A stretch of DNA of 64,000 bases, from the NCBI GenBank assembly GCA_038496445.1, contig JALMLS010000370.1:62001-126000 (forward strand), given 5' to 3'. The DNA is from Trichosphaerium sp. ATCC 40318 (taxonomy: Eukaryota > Protista > Tubulinea). The notes under the pieces are model-generated. The model was not told where the DNA came from, did not search any database, and saw nothing but the letters and a program-made list of their open reading frames with translations. Positions 13,257-19,322 of this stretch are shown piece after piece. Within the stretch, counting starts at the first letter, position 1. Each line of letters opens with the position of its first letter. The position numbers and the translations under genes were made by a program.

Positions 13257-16200
13257 ATGGCGGAGCAGAGCAGAAAAAACGAATTTACATGGCCTGTGTG
13301 GTCCGTTGAACAAGCTGAAAAGAAACTTGCAACAGATTACAAACAAAGACTTGCTGTTTGGAATGAAAAGCTACAGCAACATGTATGTGACAATTGCTTT
13401 CTGTAACAGCAAGAATTTCGTGCTAACAGATTGATAGGTGCCAAAAGAGTATCATACCATTATTGAAGATGGTCTACGCGAAGCAGTTACACAAGGTACT
13501 TATTTTAAACGTATTCTGAGCGAAAACATTCGAACTAGCTTAAAAACGCCCTAAAATTTACTTTCAACGCTCCACGGCTATAAACAAAACGTCTTGAAGA
13601 AAATTCAGAGAAGTTAACTATAAAGGCGGAAACCAATACTCAAATTCAGAAATTTGTGTCATTTTAAAAACCGTTTACTGATGACCCTCCTCTAGCTCCT
13701 ACTTTAAAAGATCAGGGAGTGACTAAGAAGTTTTACAACTTTTTGACATATCACAACAATGTGACGATGATGAAGGAGAATTGGAAAGGTTTCACTAACG
13801 TACGTCAACATTATATCAAACACCCTTTGTTTACGCCGAGGAATACTTTCATTAGTTCTATTTTAAGCACTGGCCACACTCTAACCGTATGTTATAGTTT
13901 ACAGGATCGAGTTTTAAAGTTGGTGGCAAACGTTCACGTCGTAAAATGGGCGACGATTCGATTTATCGCGCCAACCCTGAACTGGTTCAACTGCTTCCAA
14001 GGGGATTAACAATTATCAGGGGTACAGACATTCAGAATAAACGTTTTGATGTGCTTACTTGTCGCCTCTAGATTCTAAAACGCAGCACTCAGAGGTTGTT
14101 GTGTTTGCTAACAGGAAATTTTTTGGGCGTCAAGAAGGTGACGATGATGACACTGACCTCTGTTCTTCGTCCATGCAAGAAGGTAATTTTTGTTGTTGCA
14201 TTGCATGTAAAGTACAAACACGTGTTTAGATGCCTTTAAAAAGTTTTTGGTTTCGATTAAAGCCAACGGTGAAAATTGCCAGGTTCGTCATTCGTTCGTT
14301 CAAATGTCTTGTCATTAAAATCATTGATAGATTGGTGTCATGCCTGACGGCAAAGGGTGGTGTATTGGCTCGAAGAATCGTAAAATATTGGCGTTAACAA
14401 AAGACGATGTGAAGAGATTTAAAGATGATCAAATGTACTTCAAACATATTTCAAATCAACATTGTCCACGTGACTGACTTTCTTTGAGGTATTCTTATGC
14501 TAGTGAGATGGCCCTCGGGTTTTTCGCATACCTTGAGAAGATGGGAAAAGAAAAAGAGCAGGTAAGTCAGCGGACTAGTTAACTGTACATACAAGTATTG
14601 ATGTATCTCTCTTTACAGGAGTTGATAGACTTTTTGTTGGCGACACGACTCACCCTCAATTTCGAATTTGAAAGCCCTGCTCATCAACATTTGGTATTGC
14701 TCAAGGAAGAAAGGCTAGTCATGATTGCAGTCACTGGTATACATATTCAAAACAAAGCATTGCATCCTATCTTCAGTACGTTCTCAGAAAACAGTCTTCA
14801 CTTGACTTATACCGTCTAATAGCTTCTGCCATTGGCAAGTATTTCGGATTCCCTTCAGCTCTTGAAGACACCACAACCTATGACAAGGTACATTACTATT
14901 ACTGCTCTCAGTTGAGTTCTAAGTCGTGTTATTAGAGTAGCGCAGATGAGATCTGTACAAAGATAATCCATGAGTTTGATTGTGAGGGAGGTGTACTCAT
15001 TTTACTTGACAAAGACATGCAAGTATTTGATTTTGTCAAGGTAAACTAATCATCAAGTTGACCTACTCCATGGTATGCTAAATATTTGTTTGTAGGTTAA
15101 AACGTACTGGTATATAGCTCTCCGAGCAATACGTGAAAAAGTGAAGCATTTGGCTAATAATGCAACGTTGTACAAGGCGTGTAATGGCATTCAATCAAGG
15201 CTTCAGATGTTACAGCAACAACGTAATTTGTCTAGGACCCTCATTGACAAATTTGTTAAACTTGGTGTATGCTTTGCTGAGTGGCTAACACAAGATAAGG
15301 CGCATCTCGAAGAGTATGTCCAGACGACTACTTAAACCCTACTCACTCTTTTTTTCACAGCTTGGTCGATCACTATCCTCTCAGGTGGCACCAATTCCTC
15401 GTTGCAAAGAAGTATCCGCTTGATAAGAGCCTGCTATCAATCCCAGATGCGGATATCCCTGTTGTGAAATTCAGTAAAGATGACTTGCCTCTCCTTGTAA
15501 TTATACAAGGTATACCAGGACTCGGTAAATCATTCGTTTGCAGCAAAGTACGTTGGTTAATTACATCGTTTTGAAACTGATACACCTCCAAGCTTGTCGA
15601 AACTTTAAGTGACCACACTCAAGGTGTCCCTATCTCCGCTGTGGCTGTGGCTCAAGATGACTTTGTCAAAGAACACGGCAAGGTAATGTTGGATGCTTTG
15701 TATTCTGTTTTTCTTTACTGATTATGTGTAGAAGAGTGGTCAATTTTGTGTGAAACACGTTCGTCAGTTATGTGCTGACAAGAAACACAAAGTAATCATC
15801 TTGGCGAGGAATAACGGCAACAAACAACAATATAAAAATTATCTAAACGTGGAATCCGATGGATTGTGTCGTGTCATCTTTATTGCACCTGAAGAAATGA
15901 CAACAAAGATCGAAGAGCTCGTTTATTTGTCCATGGTACCAATCATCCATTTTCTCAATGTTGAGTTAGTCTAACAATCCTTTAGGCATCAGTACTTTAC
16001 AGACAAGTCTCTAAAGAAGCACATCCTACAGGTATTTGAATAGCCTGTTATTGTAGTTGAAAGCCATACTAATGTTTATTTTAAGACTCGATGAAACAGA
16101 CAGCACTGGCGTCACTTCCTCTCAAGTTCCTCGGAGAGTTTAAACAACACCCAGCAGCGTTTACTGTGAAGTATGTTAATGGCAAAGTTACTGTACCATC

Positions 16201-17005
16201 GTTCAACAAATTCAAGCAATTCATCAAGCCTTTCAAGGTACGGAAATATTGCTCTTGTTTCAATTTCGATATCACTAAATTTTGTTTCTTTAGAGCAGAG
16301 GATTCAAGTCCAAGGATGCAACGCAAAAGGACTTGCAAATGTATGGTCTTGTGGGGAAAGATGCTATTGCAACCGTCGTTGAGAAGGGTCATCGTCCAGC
16401 TGAGAGTACAGCTAAAGCAATGGCGGCAATAATTAGAAAAATACTACCTGTTCAAATACCTCAAACTGGTAAGCCTCCATCACCCATCTCAGCTCACAAA
16501 ACTCACTATTTGCAGGATCATACATCGGCGTCAAACTAAGTCTGGAGACATCCAAGTTGCTCATGCAAAAATGCACAGCTTTATTGGATGCATCTTCTAT
16601 CGCCAAGTGGCAAAAACATGGCAACCATGTTACCTTTGCGCATGCCAATAACTTCTTTGATATCCAAGACTTGTGGTCAAAGGTGGAAAGCAAACTCGGA
16701 GAAGAGATCACAATCAATATCACTGGTTTAGTCCATGATGCAAAGAGCTTGGCTGCTGTCACCTTGAATCTCGTTGGCAGTGATGGCACATCTCTAGACA
16801 GCTTAGTACATACAGGCGTACCGCATATCACCATCGTTACAGCACCAGGTATTATCATTTTCAAGCGACTCTTTTACATCTGTTTTGACACCATTTGTTA
16901 GGCGTGCCAGCCTACAGGTCTTCCACTGTTATAAAAGAAGGTAAAGCAGAAAAGAAGGCTCTAAAAATGAAGATAACAGGCCGTGTCCACATGTTTTCGT
17001 ACTGA
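13257..17005 (+). CDS. Trl1-like trifunctional RNA/tRNA ligase (ATP-dependent ligase - polynucleotide kinase - 2H cyclic phosphodiesterase)
   Basis: Ligase motifs I SIKANGE, Ia GSKN, III NFEF, IV CEGGVL, V VKVKTYWY..R..RE; P-loop GIPGLGKS with AQDDF and ARNN; 2H motifs HVTF and HITI; stop TGA 17003-17005. Confidence 0.8.
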
Positions 17006-17085
17006 TTTGGGGTTTTTTTGTTGTTGTTTGTCGTTATTAATAAAGTTTGTTTTCATTATGTACAAGGTTGTTTTATTTACAAATA

Positions 17086-18836
17086 TCAGTACAATTTGAG
17101 ACCAGCTATTAAGGAGTCTAAAGCCGATCTGTTGCATGGTCCAAAGGCAATGGCTGTTTGTGTACCTTCCTTAACTTGTGTCGCTCCTGCGTCTACCACC
17201 AGAAAATGAGGAACGTTAAGTTTTGCAGCTTCTGTTGCCCTTGTATCCAATGAACCTGTTGTTTTGACTATAATTTTTCTTTGTCCGGTATTTAGCCATT
17301 CTTCAGCTACTGACGGACTGTTTTTCTGAACTTCCAGATATCCGCCCATCGTAGCGTGGCAGCATTGCGATGCTATCTTACCTTTGGACATTTTTATATC
17401 TGTTCTTACGCATATGGCCATGATCACTTGTTCCTTAACAGCTGGTTCAAATCCAGGATCGTAATGGACGAGCTTAGTTTCTCCTGTTTTCTTAAAATCA
17501 CGTGGACAGCAAGGACAGGCTTCGACGCCACTATGAAGTTTGGCTAAGAATGACGCTGATGGTTTGAAAAACTTGGTAGGCAGGAGAAGATCGAACATCT
17601 TGTGTACTTTCATTCCTGTATCAATTGTTAGTTTAAGAACAATGTATAGCTCCCATCATACCTTTTCTAAGTACCCGAAAATCGGGGCGATCAGCATTAT
17701 TCAGGCCGTATAGAATATCACGGTCCAACTCCCATGAGTACAACTGGCTTCCAGTCGATGAGTATGGCCCAAATCTACGAGGATATTAGGACACAACTTG
17801 AAAAATGTTTGTACGTACGGATTATATTCGCATAGTGTAGCTGTGTTGCTGCTTTGGTTGTATATAATGTCCATGATGTAATTAGGCCATGGTACCAACG
17901 GGTCTGTTATTTTGAATACTTGCAGTGCCGCGTCAATCACCTTATCTCCAAATTCTGGTTTCTCAAAAGCAGGCATGTAGTTTGGGTAACACATTGGATT
18001 GATTGCTGTCATTTTGTTGTTATACACCCAACACCTAAATTCCATCTTGCTTGGGAATTCTACCTGTAAAGAAAAGCGTATTAATACCAACATGTTGTAT
18101 TAGATGACTTACCCAATGTTGTATAACAAGATTAAGTGTCGGGTCGTGCTCTGGCTTCACTTTAAGTTGCAAATAGCTCCGACAATCCTCTGCAGTTCTT
18201 TTGCTTGATACTAATGCCTTCACAACTTGTAGTGTAGTTCTAGCTTGACAACGCTTCAAAGGAGGTTCCTTGTCTGTTGCCTTTATGAGAGCGTTCATCA
18301 ATTGCTGTTCTTTGTAAAATAAACTATCCTTTGGGCTTCGTGTTGATAGTTTGAAAAAGAATGAAGGTTTCTCACTTGTAGACGCTTCACTGAGGTTCAA
18401 GGTTTTTAGCGCTTCTTCCACTTGAGGCTTTAATGTGGCTGCCAATTCAAATATTTTTGACATTGCGTCCTCTAAACTCAGTCAGCAAGACGCTGTACTT
18501 CAATAATACTTACGTAGATACACTCCTCTATCGGTTTCGAGATGTAGGTTATATATGGATTCAAGTGTGTCACGGGTTAATGGGATGAGTGCTGCTGGCG
18601 GCACTATTGGCTTTTCGTTGATAGTTTTCTTGGATATAGCAGGATACCACGTGTCATAATTGAACGAGTTCGCATACAAAAGATATAACTGAGCCATGAG
18701 ATCCTCGATACCAAAATCAGACGATTGCGTAAAAATAGAATGATAAAATTCTGTCTTCTCTAAATGGTAGTCAATAAAACATACATGTCTCGCGTGATGT
18801 ACCTTCTTCTGGCGTTCTTGGAGTTATTGTACTCAT
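17086..18836 (-). CDS. CDC123/R2K-family ATP-grasp domain fused to C-terminal PTH2-type peptidyl-tRNA hydrolase (start may extend to about 19189)
   Basis: ATP-grasp motifs FFKLSTRSPKD, EFRCWV, YIMDI, CEYNPFG, LYSWELD; phase-1 GT-AG intron 17661-17616 joins ..RVLRK-G-MKVHK.. in frame to PTH2 motifs VRTDIKMSKGKIASQCCHA, WLNTGQRKIIVK, VVDAGATQ, AFGP, LKLY*. Confidence 0.8.
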
Positions 18837-19322
18837 TTTTTCTTTTGGGAGCAACTTTGGTGGTGTCAATTTAACTGAAAGCTGATTGATTAAGGCGCAA
18901 CAGCTTTTGGGGTATGCGACCAGCAACAGAGACGAATTTGGTTCCAAAGCTTGTACATGGAACGGCAAATACTTGTATATGTTGTGTTGGCACACAGGTA
19001 TACGCGTGCTGTCCGCAAAGCTAAGTTTACGGTTTTCCTTCTTAGATAGCTTCGGTTGGATAGCGAACGCTACGGAACAGTTATAGCTGGATTTTATACG
19101 TATAAAGTACCTTCTGCTAGCGTATTAAACTCAAAAGGGGGAGTTGTGGTCATAAGAGGCTGTGTTGTAACTTTGAATAAGTAGAACATGTTGTTCTCTG
19201 AAAATATGACGAAAAAGTTAGAAAAGAGTTGTGAACAAATTTCAAGTAGATTGTCTCCTTGATCAATAATACATTGTAAACAGTTCTGTACAGTTTTTAT
19301 TGTTGCGTATAGCAGCAGTTAT

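Follow-up and report, generated by a model that had tools for sequence, protein, structure and literature searches.

Can an ATP-grasp module of the CDC123 type and a peptidyl-tRNA hydrolase of the PTH2 type be parts of one protein, and if so, what would such a protein do? The question is raised by a locus in a 64,000-nucleotide (nt) stretch of the genome of the protist Trichosphaerium sp. ATCC 40318 (Tubulinea; assembly GCA_038496445.1, contig JALMLS010000370.1, positions 62,001 to 126,000), which we call the window and in whose coordinates positions are given unless another contig is named. A first-pass annotation, made from the letters of the sequence, had proposed that a CDC123/R2K-type ATP-grasp ligase is fused here, in frame, to PTH2. 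We find on the minus strand, from 19189 to 17086, a gene with six short GT-AG introns and a stop-free coding sequence of 1839 nt (about 612 amino acids, aa), and regard both the identity of its product, D123-PTH2 (D123 being the Pfam family of CDC123), and the fusion itself as near certain. The gene belongs to a small conserved protist family in which four parts follow one another in a fixed order: an N-terminal extension of about 115 aa, a CDC123-like (R2K.1) ATP-grasp, a connector with the motif CPCCPR, and PTH2.

An ATP-grasp and a PTH2 domain in one spliced gene

Parts of the stretch are present in four public runs, whose contigs were placed on positions 16900-19100. A 920-nt contig from run X3 covers 17061-17614, 17661-17774 and 17819-18064, so that exactly introns 5 and 4 are missing from it, while in run X1 one contig lacks intron 3 and a second shows intron 2 removed. 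Spliced RNA is the most plausible source of such intron-free contigs, and the lack of introns 4 and 5 in the X3 contig thus means that a joined mRNA exists. The proposal that a 46-nt intron (17661-17616) leads in frame into a single 530-nt exon is borne out by this contig, which is spliced at that very place. Exons 0 and 1 and introns 0 and 1 have no read support among the run contigs. Compared with the window, the X3 and X1 contigs carry seven coding differences, six of which are synonymous.

The splice at intron 5 is in phase 1 (AAA G/GA ATG) and yields FRVLRK-G-MKVHKMFDL; if the intron is retained, the frame meets a stop 9 codons into it. The five introns first proposed (43, 42, 49, 44 and 46 nt) lie where they had been placed, and the motifs read along the frame (KLSTRSPKD, EFRCWV, MDII, EYNP/FG, LYSW, CPCC, KGK, QCCHA and DAGAT) are all present. 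The proposed start of the gene, ATG 18836, had to be given up: homology to three relatives described below (P0003, P0030 and P0029) runs upstream, to about 19189, which adds one intron and makes ATG 18836 an internal Met of exon 1.

The last exon, exon 6, scores 114.5 bits against Pfam PTH2 (PF01981; E = 3.8e-33, cut-off 23) and 100 bits against TIGR00283 (cut-off 82), and it stays below the cut-off of the archaeal equivalog NF003314 (110.5 vs 126). Among solved structures it is closest to human Bit1/PTH2 and archaeal Pth2, with 35-40% identity. In its AlphaFold model, which has a predicted local distance difference test score (pLDDT) of 86.6, residues 60-175 superpose on PTH2 structures with a root-mean-square deviation of 1.1-1.2 Å (Z scores of 21.5 for 1wn2, 20.4 for 1q7s and 20.2 for 1xty), and the connector has no fold match. 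In an alignment of 47 sequences the window PTH2 keeps every column that is invariant or conserved to 90% or more, and K79 (of GK), D141 and T145 (of DAGxT) of exon 6 align to the KGK and DAGKT of 1xty. In the S. solfataricus PTH2 (1xty) the corresponding residues are Lys18, Asp86 and Thr90. The Ala of DAGAT had been singled out as the one departure from an otherwise intact domain. The domain is indeed otherwise intact, but the position itself varies across the alignment (29 R, 6 H, 5 L, 3 K, 2 A, 1 F and 1 S), and the S. solfataricus enzyme has Lys there and that of P. horikoshii has Leu, so that the Ala departs from no signature and could be ruled out as a defect. Peptidyl-tRNA is the only known substrate of PTH2, and with its intact-looking catalytic set the window domain is predicted, from profiles and model, to be a peptidyl-tRNA hydrolase.

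The ATP-grasp module is a distant relative of CDC123. Exon 4 alone reaches 19.9 bits (E = 4.4e-4) against Pfam D123 (PF07065), where the gathering cut-off is 24 bits, and in single-exon searches exons 3 and 4, which are too divergent, matched no Cdc123 chain. The orthologues lie above the cut-off (P0003 54, P0004 52.5, P0030 42.4 and P0152 68 bits), and a profile of the family's ATP-grasp matches human CDC123 (8phd) with E = 1.2e-9 and S. pombe Cdc123 with E = 4e-6. In the profile alignment ExRC(W/F)V corresponds to EFRCFV, YILDxxY to FVFDIY and CEYNPFG to DFNPFG of human CDC123. ExR, Asp and ExN are features of the R2K clade, whose signature is a Lys in strand 2 of the RAGNYA fold element together with a second Lys or Arg in the next loop (PMC4431377). 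This signature is found in exon 3 (FFFKLSTRSPKD), the motif being identical in P0003 and P0030, and the window thus retains the strand-2 Lys, the loop Arg/Lys (KLSTRSPKD), ExR, Asp and ExN.

In the AlphaFold model of P0003 (pLDDT 66, a moderate value, and above 90 in the PTH2 part), residues 171-445/451 match Cdc123 (Z of 12.7 for 4zgp and 11.8 for 8phd), followed by RimK and the D-Ala-D-Ala ligases (Z 6-7), with RimK the second-best fold after Cdc123. Residues 510-625 match PTH2 structures (Z about 20), and the first 125 or so residues and the connector have no fold match; neither exon 3 nor the N-terminal 175 aa of P0003 had a usable match in a protein atlas. Structure prediction, suggested at the outset as a check, thus returns a PTH2 fold for exon 6 and a Cdc123 fold for the ATP-grasp of an orthologue, and the claim of one polypeptide carrying both enzymes with both catalytic sets intact agrees with motifs, profiles and the transcript contig. 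The features of the gene are listed in Table 1.

Table 1 Features of the D123-PTH2 gene in the window, in the order in which they are transcribed
Feature	Coordinates	Strand	Description	Support
Exon 0	19111..19189	-	ATG 19189, second in-frame ATG 19153; family-opening F-x-T-L-x-E motif	tblastn with P0003/P0030, stop-free join
Intron 0	19070..19110	-	41 nt, GT..AG	links FNTLAE to AFAIQPK as in P0003, P0030, P0029
Exon 1	18803..19069	-	family-specific N-terminal extension (IPVCQHNIY..., TPEE), open frame	homology to P0003 19-119, P0030 116-230
Intron 1	18760..18802	-	43 nt, GT..AG, frame-restoring	
Exon 2	18514..18759	-	CDC123-like module begins (DLMAQLYLLYANSFNYDTWY)	aligned to P0003, P0030; 3' end is loose X1-contig end
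Intron 2	18472..18513	-	42 nt	X1 contig stopping at 18471 runs on with last 13 bases of exon 2
Exon 3	18113..18471	-	ATP-grasp N-lobe, R2K signature FFFKLSTRSPKD	52% identity to P0003; motif per PMC4431377
Intron 3	18064..18112	-	49 nt	absent from an X1 contig
Exon 4	17819..18063	-	ATP-grasp C-lobe: EFRCWV (ExR), IMDIIY (Asp), CEYN (ExN start)	Pfam D123 E 4.4e-4, exon alone
Intron 4	17775..17818	-	44 nt	absent from X3 contig
Exon 5	17662..17774	-	PFGPYSSTGSQLYSWELD...PDFRVLRK, end of CDC123-like core	65% identity to P0003; in X3 contig
Intron 5	17616..17661	-	46 nt, GTATGA..CTAAC..ACAG; key junction	absent from X3 contig
Exon 6, first part	17425..17615	-	D123 homology tail and connector MFDL..PSASFL..CPCCPR..TKLVH	conserved in six family members
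Exon 6, second part	17086..17424	-	PTH2 domain, stop TGA 17088-17086	Pfam PTH2, TIGR00283, fold model
Start of 3' untranslated region	17061..17085	-	minimum extent	X3 contig reaches 17061

The family and the origin of the fusion

Exon 6 was searched against 1.84 billion representative proteins, in which ordinary PTH2 matches are 110-250 aa long. P0003 (625 aa), P0004 (382 aa, partial) and P0030 (781 aa) exceed the cut-offs of Pfam D123 and of PTH2, and P0152 (362 aa, partial), which was found by a word-based search limited to residues 275-500, likewise combines D123 with PTH2. The word-based protein search with P0003 or with an alignment returned P0003 itself only. P0003 is an unbroken open reading frame (ORF) on a 2514-nt contig, which may be a transcript, from the Logan assembly of a public run; environmental contigs of the Joint Genome Institute are the source of P0004 and P0152, and P0030 is NCBI KAH3756117.1 of Pelomyxa schiedti (L035:6001-8762). 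The search for the same architecture in other genomes, which had been proposed with the fusion, thus led to Pelomyxa schiedti, to the Logan contig, which is free of introns, and to three environmental sequences. The record KAH3756117.1 is named 'unconventional myosin-VI'; Pfam sees only D123 and PTH2 in it. A metagenome scan yielded just the P0004 contig and one D123-only locus, and the viral contigs scanned contained no relative.

Family members are 35-52% identical and share blocks over their full length (DLMAQLY..ANSFN..WY, FFFKL(S/N)xRSxKD, RCQAR, ExRCWV, YILDxxY, CE(Y/I/F)NP(F/W)GP..STGS.LYSW.LD and PDFRxL). Across intron 5 they share G-M-x-V-x-x-MFDL, followed by PSxxFL...CPCCPRxW...PPTxLVH, and since the residues over the splice junction (FRVLRK-G-MKVHKMFDL) are conserved in P0003, P0004, P0030 and P0152, splicing of intron 5 is the conserved reading. 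What had been described as a linker with a CPCC motif does contain that motif, but it is a conserved block of the family and no loose linker. In P0089 (305 aa), the counterpart of exon 6, residues 66-115 or thereabouts form a Cys-rich, C1-like zinc-finger insert after CPCCAR (Pfam C1_2, E = 9e-4), which suggests that the connector may be a metal-binding region. Four members, namely the window gene, P0003, P0004 and P0030, retain the catalytic residues of both enzymes. In P0029 (521 aa) the ATP-grasp is decayed and has lost its catalytic motifs, and after the connector come two PTH2 copies, the first decayed and the second intact; P0152 keeps the ATP-grasp motifs and has lost DAGxT.

These relatives also bear on the reading in which the locus holds two neighbouring genes, the ATP-grasp ending inside what we call intron 5 and PTH2 starting at ATG 17613, with the splice a coincidence or a rare read-through. 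This reading can draw on the stop that the unspliced frame meets 9 codons into the intron, on the position of the ATG, 2 nt after the acceptor, on the Met after the junction, which is conserved in all members, and on the P0089 contig, which was called as a 480-aa D123 ORF and a 305-aa PTH2 ORF 103 nt apart. However, the sole contig over the site is spliced, P0003, P0004 and P0152 are unbroken ORFs across the junction, and D123 homology extends beyond it, the Pfam D123 match passing the junction Met by 4-24 residues in the relatives (by 24 in P0152). Two separate genes are therefore very improbable, and we consider that reading largely refuted. The same overrun of the D123 match weakens the candidate explanation that the Met after intron 5 was the start of a once-separate CPCC-PTH2 gene. 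P0089, which might pass for a standalone CPCC-PTH2 protein, has the D123 ORF 103 nt upstream on the same strand, and the two ORFs are probably one gene that a gene-caller split at the same intron.

How did the PTH2 part come to stand behind the ATP-grasp? The first-pass annotation had seen in the uninterrupted PTH2 exon a capture by retroposition or horizontal gene transfer, a candidate that we rejected as unsupported. The D123 tail and CPCCPR share the exon with PTH2, and the composition is uniform, with a GC content of 0.43 in the PTH2 part and of 0.35 at third codon positions, equal to that of the remainder of the gene. In the Pelomyxa gene the same Gly codon is split by an intron, there in phase 2 and in the window gene in phase 1, and in both genes connector and PTH2 form a single last exon. 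The nearest named relatives of the PTH2 are standalone, eukaryotic proteins with 40-46% identity, and the nearest relatives include those of Physarum, a green alga, a foraminiferan and a yeast, and the copy that this genome carries on contig C204. With the PTH2 domains of other fused proteins the window PTH2 shares 35-37% identity, and a PTH2 tree (79 rows, 117 columns) did not resolve, the fused PTH2s not being recovered as one clade. In the approximately unbiased test a single clade of fused PTH2s was not rejected (p = 0.36), by which a single origin of the fusion is allowed, short of being shown. Because the connector and the intron site are shared, the simplest reading of the sequences is one old fusion event.

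Two further sets of PTH2 proteins were seen alongside the family. P0059 (410 aa) and P0119 (346 aa) carry a Peptidase_C15 domain (pyroglutamyl peptidase), a UBA-like region and then PTH2. P0001 (285 aa, eukprot) and P0002 (264 aa, Mastigamoeba balamuthi) repeat the N-terminal half of PTH2 with the linker, near-exactly by eye, which is either a tandem exon duplication or an artefact of gene model or assembly.

Genomic setting

The D123/CDC123 family is single-copy in most eukaryotes. In the 70-Mb assembly it is greatly expanded: a profile search finds D123 matches at some 15 loci beyond the fusion gene (on contigs C20, C1, C124, C34, C7, C9, C113, C87, C207, C31, C60, C35, C14, C125 and C11 and at C79:201856), and many of these further D123-like loci keep the KLxxRSPKD and EFRxFV motifs. 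The best of them, C20:370555-371688, which matches profile positions 1-278, looks like classical CDC123. The fusion gene has the lowest D123 score among the matches listed, with three extra regions besides; it is not the genome's best D123 match and so does not qualify as the orthologue of classical CDC123. It is single-copy, its nearest paralogue having 28% identity over exon 4. Two other PTH2 genes, both interrupted by introns, are present, one on C204 with an N-terminal membrane anchor and DAGHT and the other with DAGRT, which makes the fusion gene the third PTH2 of the genome. The question of whether separate CDC123 and PTH2 genes exist elsewhere in this genome, put at the outset, is thus answered by a classical-looking CDC123 locus and two intron-bearing PTH2 genes, and with these in place the fusion gene is an extra copy of both parts.

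On contig C60 (58358-59187, plus strand) a D123-like match and a GGACT domain are adjacent on one strand, with the GGACT domain 440 nt downstream. GGACT enzymes cut gamma-glutamyl-amine bonds. Domain III of eIF2-gamma was matched at two loci (C35:99553-99795 and C40:227455-227727), the copy on C35 being seemingly somewhat divergent from the human sequence, and there may be two eIF2-gamma-like genes beside the many CDC123-like ones.

Within the window, the 3' end of the fusion gene converges with open frames at 15299-16901 on the plus strand, which have a P-loop, GIPGLGKS, near 15500 and, downstream, the H-x-T motifs HVTF and HITI within 16557-16901. In these respects they resemble a polynucleotide kinase plus a 2H phosphoesterase; in Pfam they match only the CPD domain of fungal tRNA ligase, below threshold (E = 0.066). 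They may belong to a gene of the RNA-repair type adjoining the fusion, and the Pelomyxa locus has no RNA-repair-type neighbour. Elsewhere, the segment 56001-62000 has a GC content of 0.31-0.35, as against about 0.40-0.43 in the rest of the window.

Possible function and comparison with known systems

When two enzymes are fused in nature and the fusion is conserved, this is classically taken to point to a substrate that they share. Tentatively, we propose that the two halves of the protein work on a single substrate complex linked to translation. The PTH2 half would cut the ester bond of a peptidyl-tRNA or an N-blocked aminoacyl-tRNA, while the CDC123-like half would, with ATP, recognise, hold or modify a client that carries or receives the tRNA-bound chain. 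By analogy with CDC123 this client might be a translation GTPase of the eIF2-gamma type or the product of a stalled ribosome, and the resulting job would be translation quality control or regulation. Since P0029 keeps only PTH2 intact and P0152 only the ATP-grasp, either half can persist as a non-catalytic partner, a pattern that fits two modules which would bind one substrate complex. In the assembly of eIF2, the translation initiation factor, classical CDC123 is an ATPase chaperone whose binding site is domain III of eIF2-gamma (PMC12860950).

With both catalytic sets intact in the window gene, P0003, P0004 and P0030, one could also imagine that the two activities are used in succession: PTH2 would free a peptide or an N-blocked amino acid, and the ATP-grasp would join its carboxylate, by way of an acyl-phosphate, to an amine, giving a C-terminal tag or conjugate that might, for example, mark stalled nascent chains. 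The R2K clade nests among ATP-grasps of the RimK/TTL type, which form peptide bonds and act on protein carboxylates (PMC4431377), and RimK is the next-best fold after Cdc123 in our comparison. Such an enzyme would, however, throw away the energy of the ester bond and then spend ATP, and the one active half in each of P0029 and P0152 means that a strict two-step chemistry is not obligatory. Moreover, although CDC123 has all the catalytic residues of a peptide ligase, no ligation product has been found for it or for any other protein of its family, ATPase-dependent chaperoning of eIF2 being all that has been shown (PMC12860950). We consider successive release and ligation unlikely, and likewise the tag or conjugate as its outcome; slightly less likely still is the bolder idea that ATP-grasps of the CDC123 type are genuine ligases which take as carboxylate substrate the chain that has just been freed from tRNA. 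If it were true, the fusion would be a ribosome-linked 'release-and-tag' enzyme that marks stalled nascent peptides without ubiquitin or C-terminal alanine and threonine (CAT) tailing, and it would hint at the missing chemistry of CDC123 itself.

The neighbourhood of D123 and GGACT on C60, with a D123-like match 440 nt upstream of a bond-breaking enzyme, is a parallel pairing that could be taken to favour a third possibility, in which a hydroxyl or amine of a protein or RNA receives an aminoacyl or peptidyl group from the ATP-grasp and PTH2, reused as a general aminoacyl-esterase, removes it, so that one protein would set the level of a reversible mark. This, and the reversible control that would follow from it, we hold to be unlikely too. 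PTH2 is known solely as a peptidyl-tRNA esterase, the window domain keeps the whole signature with no signs of a changed pocket, and R2K enzymes are not known to make esters.

The further D123-like loci of the genome, at least 14 in number, and a family that is patchy in distribution with members 35-52% identical, might instead suggest an effector in biological conflict, which would shut down translation or counter a parasite by deacylating tRNAs on a targeted factor. Such a role would fit the sharing of CDC123 paralogues by amoebae, Legionella and giant viruses; the fast-evolving amoebal paralogues group with those of Legionella and of the nucleocytoplasmic large DNA viruses (NCLDV), and bacterial ones occur in toxin loci (PMC4431377). 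But no relative turned up in the viral contigs scanned, the gene is single-copy and of ordinary composition, its differences between close strains (synonymous to other, 6:1) have the appearance of purifying selection, and no toxin-immunity context was seen. A conflict or defence effector is accordingly quite unlikely, more so than a writer and eraser in one chain.

The shared translation-linked complex, which we prefer, has points of its own to contend with. Intron 5 is bridged by just one contig, from one run, and the function of every member of the family is inferred. PTH2 domains have non-catalytic roles in other organisms. In this very genome a D123-like module adjoins GGACT, an unrelated partner, and with unrelated partners the module may be a general ligase, unlinked to translation factors; for the fast-evolving amoebal CDC123 paralogues, too, targets outside translation, the cytoskeleton among them, have been predicted (PMC4431377).

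CDC123-type modules matter beyond this locus in that CDC123 is essential and conserved in eukaryotes. With one of them fused to an enzyme of peptidyl-tRNA, at least one branch of the clade is physically tied to tRNA-bound chains, and the fusion offers a compact, soluble system, in a single polypeptide, for probing how R2K.1 enzymes act. Together with the pairing of D123 and GGACT, it suggests an amoebal toolkit of CDC123-like modules coupled to bond-breaking enzymes.

The expectation that the fusion is new to the literature held up: full-text searches for Cdc123 or D123 with PTH2, and for PTH2 with ATP-grasp, gave no description of it, and the founding R2K paper lists none (PMC4431377). No paper turned up under the run and accession numbers. 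Whether the architecture was already catalogued has a divided answer, as it is present in public sets with precomputed Pfam D123 and PTH2 matches, but without a name or function there. In D123-PTH2 two known families are combined into a new architecture, and its public entries are unnamed or misnamed.

Set against known systems, the fusion resembles classical CDC123 (Pfam D123, R2K.1) in fold, as judged by the model of its orthologue P0003, and in the strand-2 Lys, the loop Arg/Lys, ExR, Asp and ExN; it differs in being a distant paralogue and in adding the N-terminal extension of about 115 aa, the CPCCPR connector and PTH2. With the fast-evolving CDC123 paralogues of amoeboid protists, Legionella and NCLDV (Burroughs, Zhang and Aravind 2015, PMC4431377) it has in common an amoeba-type host, many divergent copies and retained catalytic residues, whereas no fusion to PTH2 or to any hydrolase is reported for them in that paper. 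Its PTH2 resembles PTH2/Bit1 (PTRH2) in spanning the full domain and in having the catalytic Lys (GK) as well as Asp and Thr of DAGxT; unlike PTH2/Bit1, the fusion lacks an N-terminal membrane anchor, places PTH2 behind an ATP-grasp and a Cys-motif connector, and has Ala in DAGxT. The Peptidase_C15-UBA-PTH2 proteins P0059 and P0119 also have a C-terminal PTH2 behind an enzyme that works on peptide ends, but the partner enzyme is a different one and the CPCCPR connector is missing from them, so that the relation is limited to the PTH2 domain. In the D123-GGACT pair on C60, finally, a CDC123-like module is again followed by a bond-breaking enzyme on the same strand, there a gamma-glutamylamine cyclotransferase behind a different D123 paralogue.

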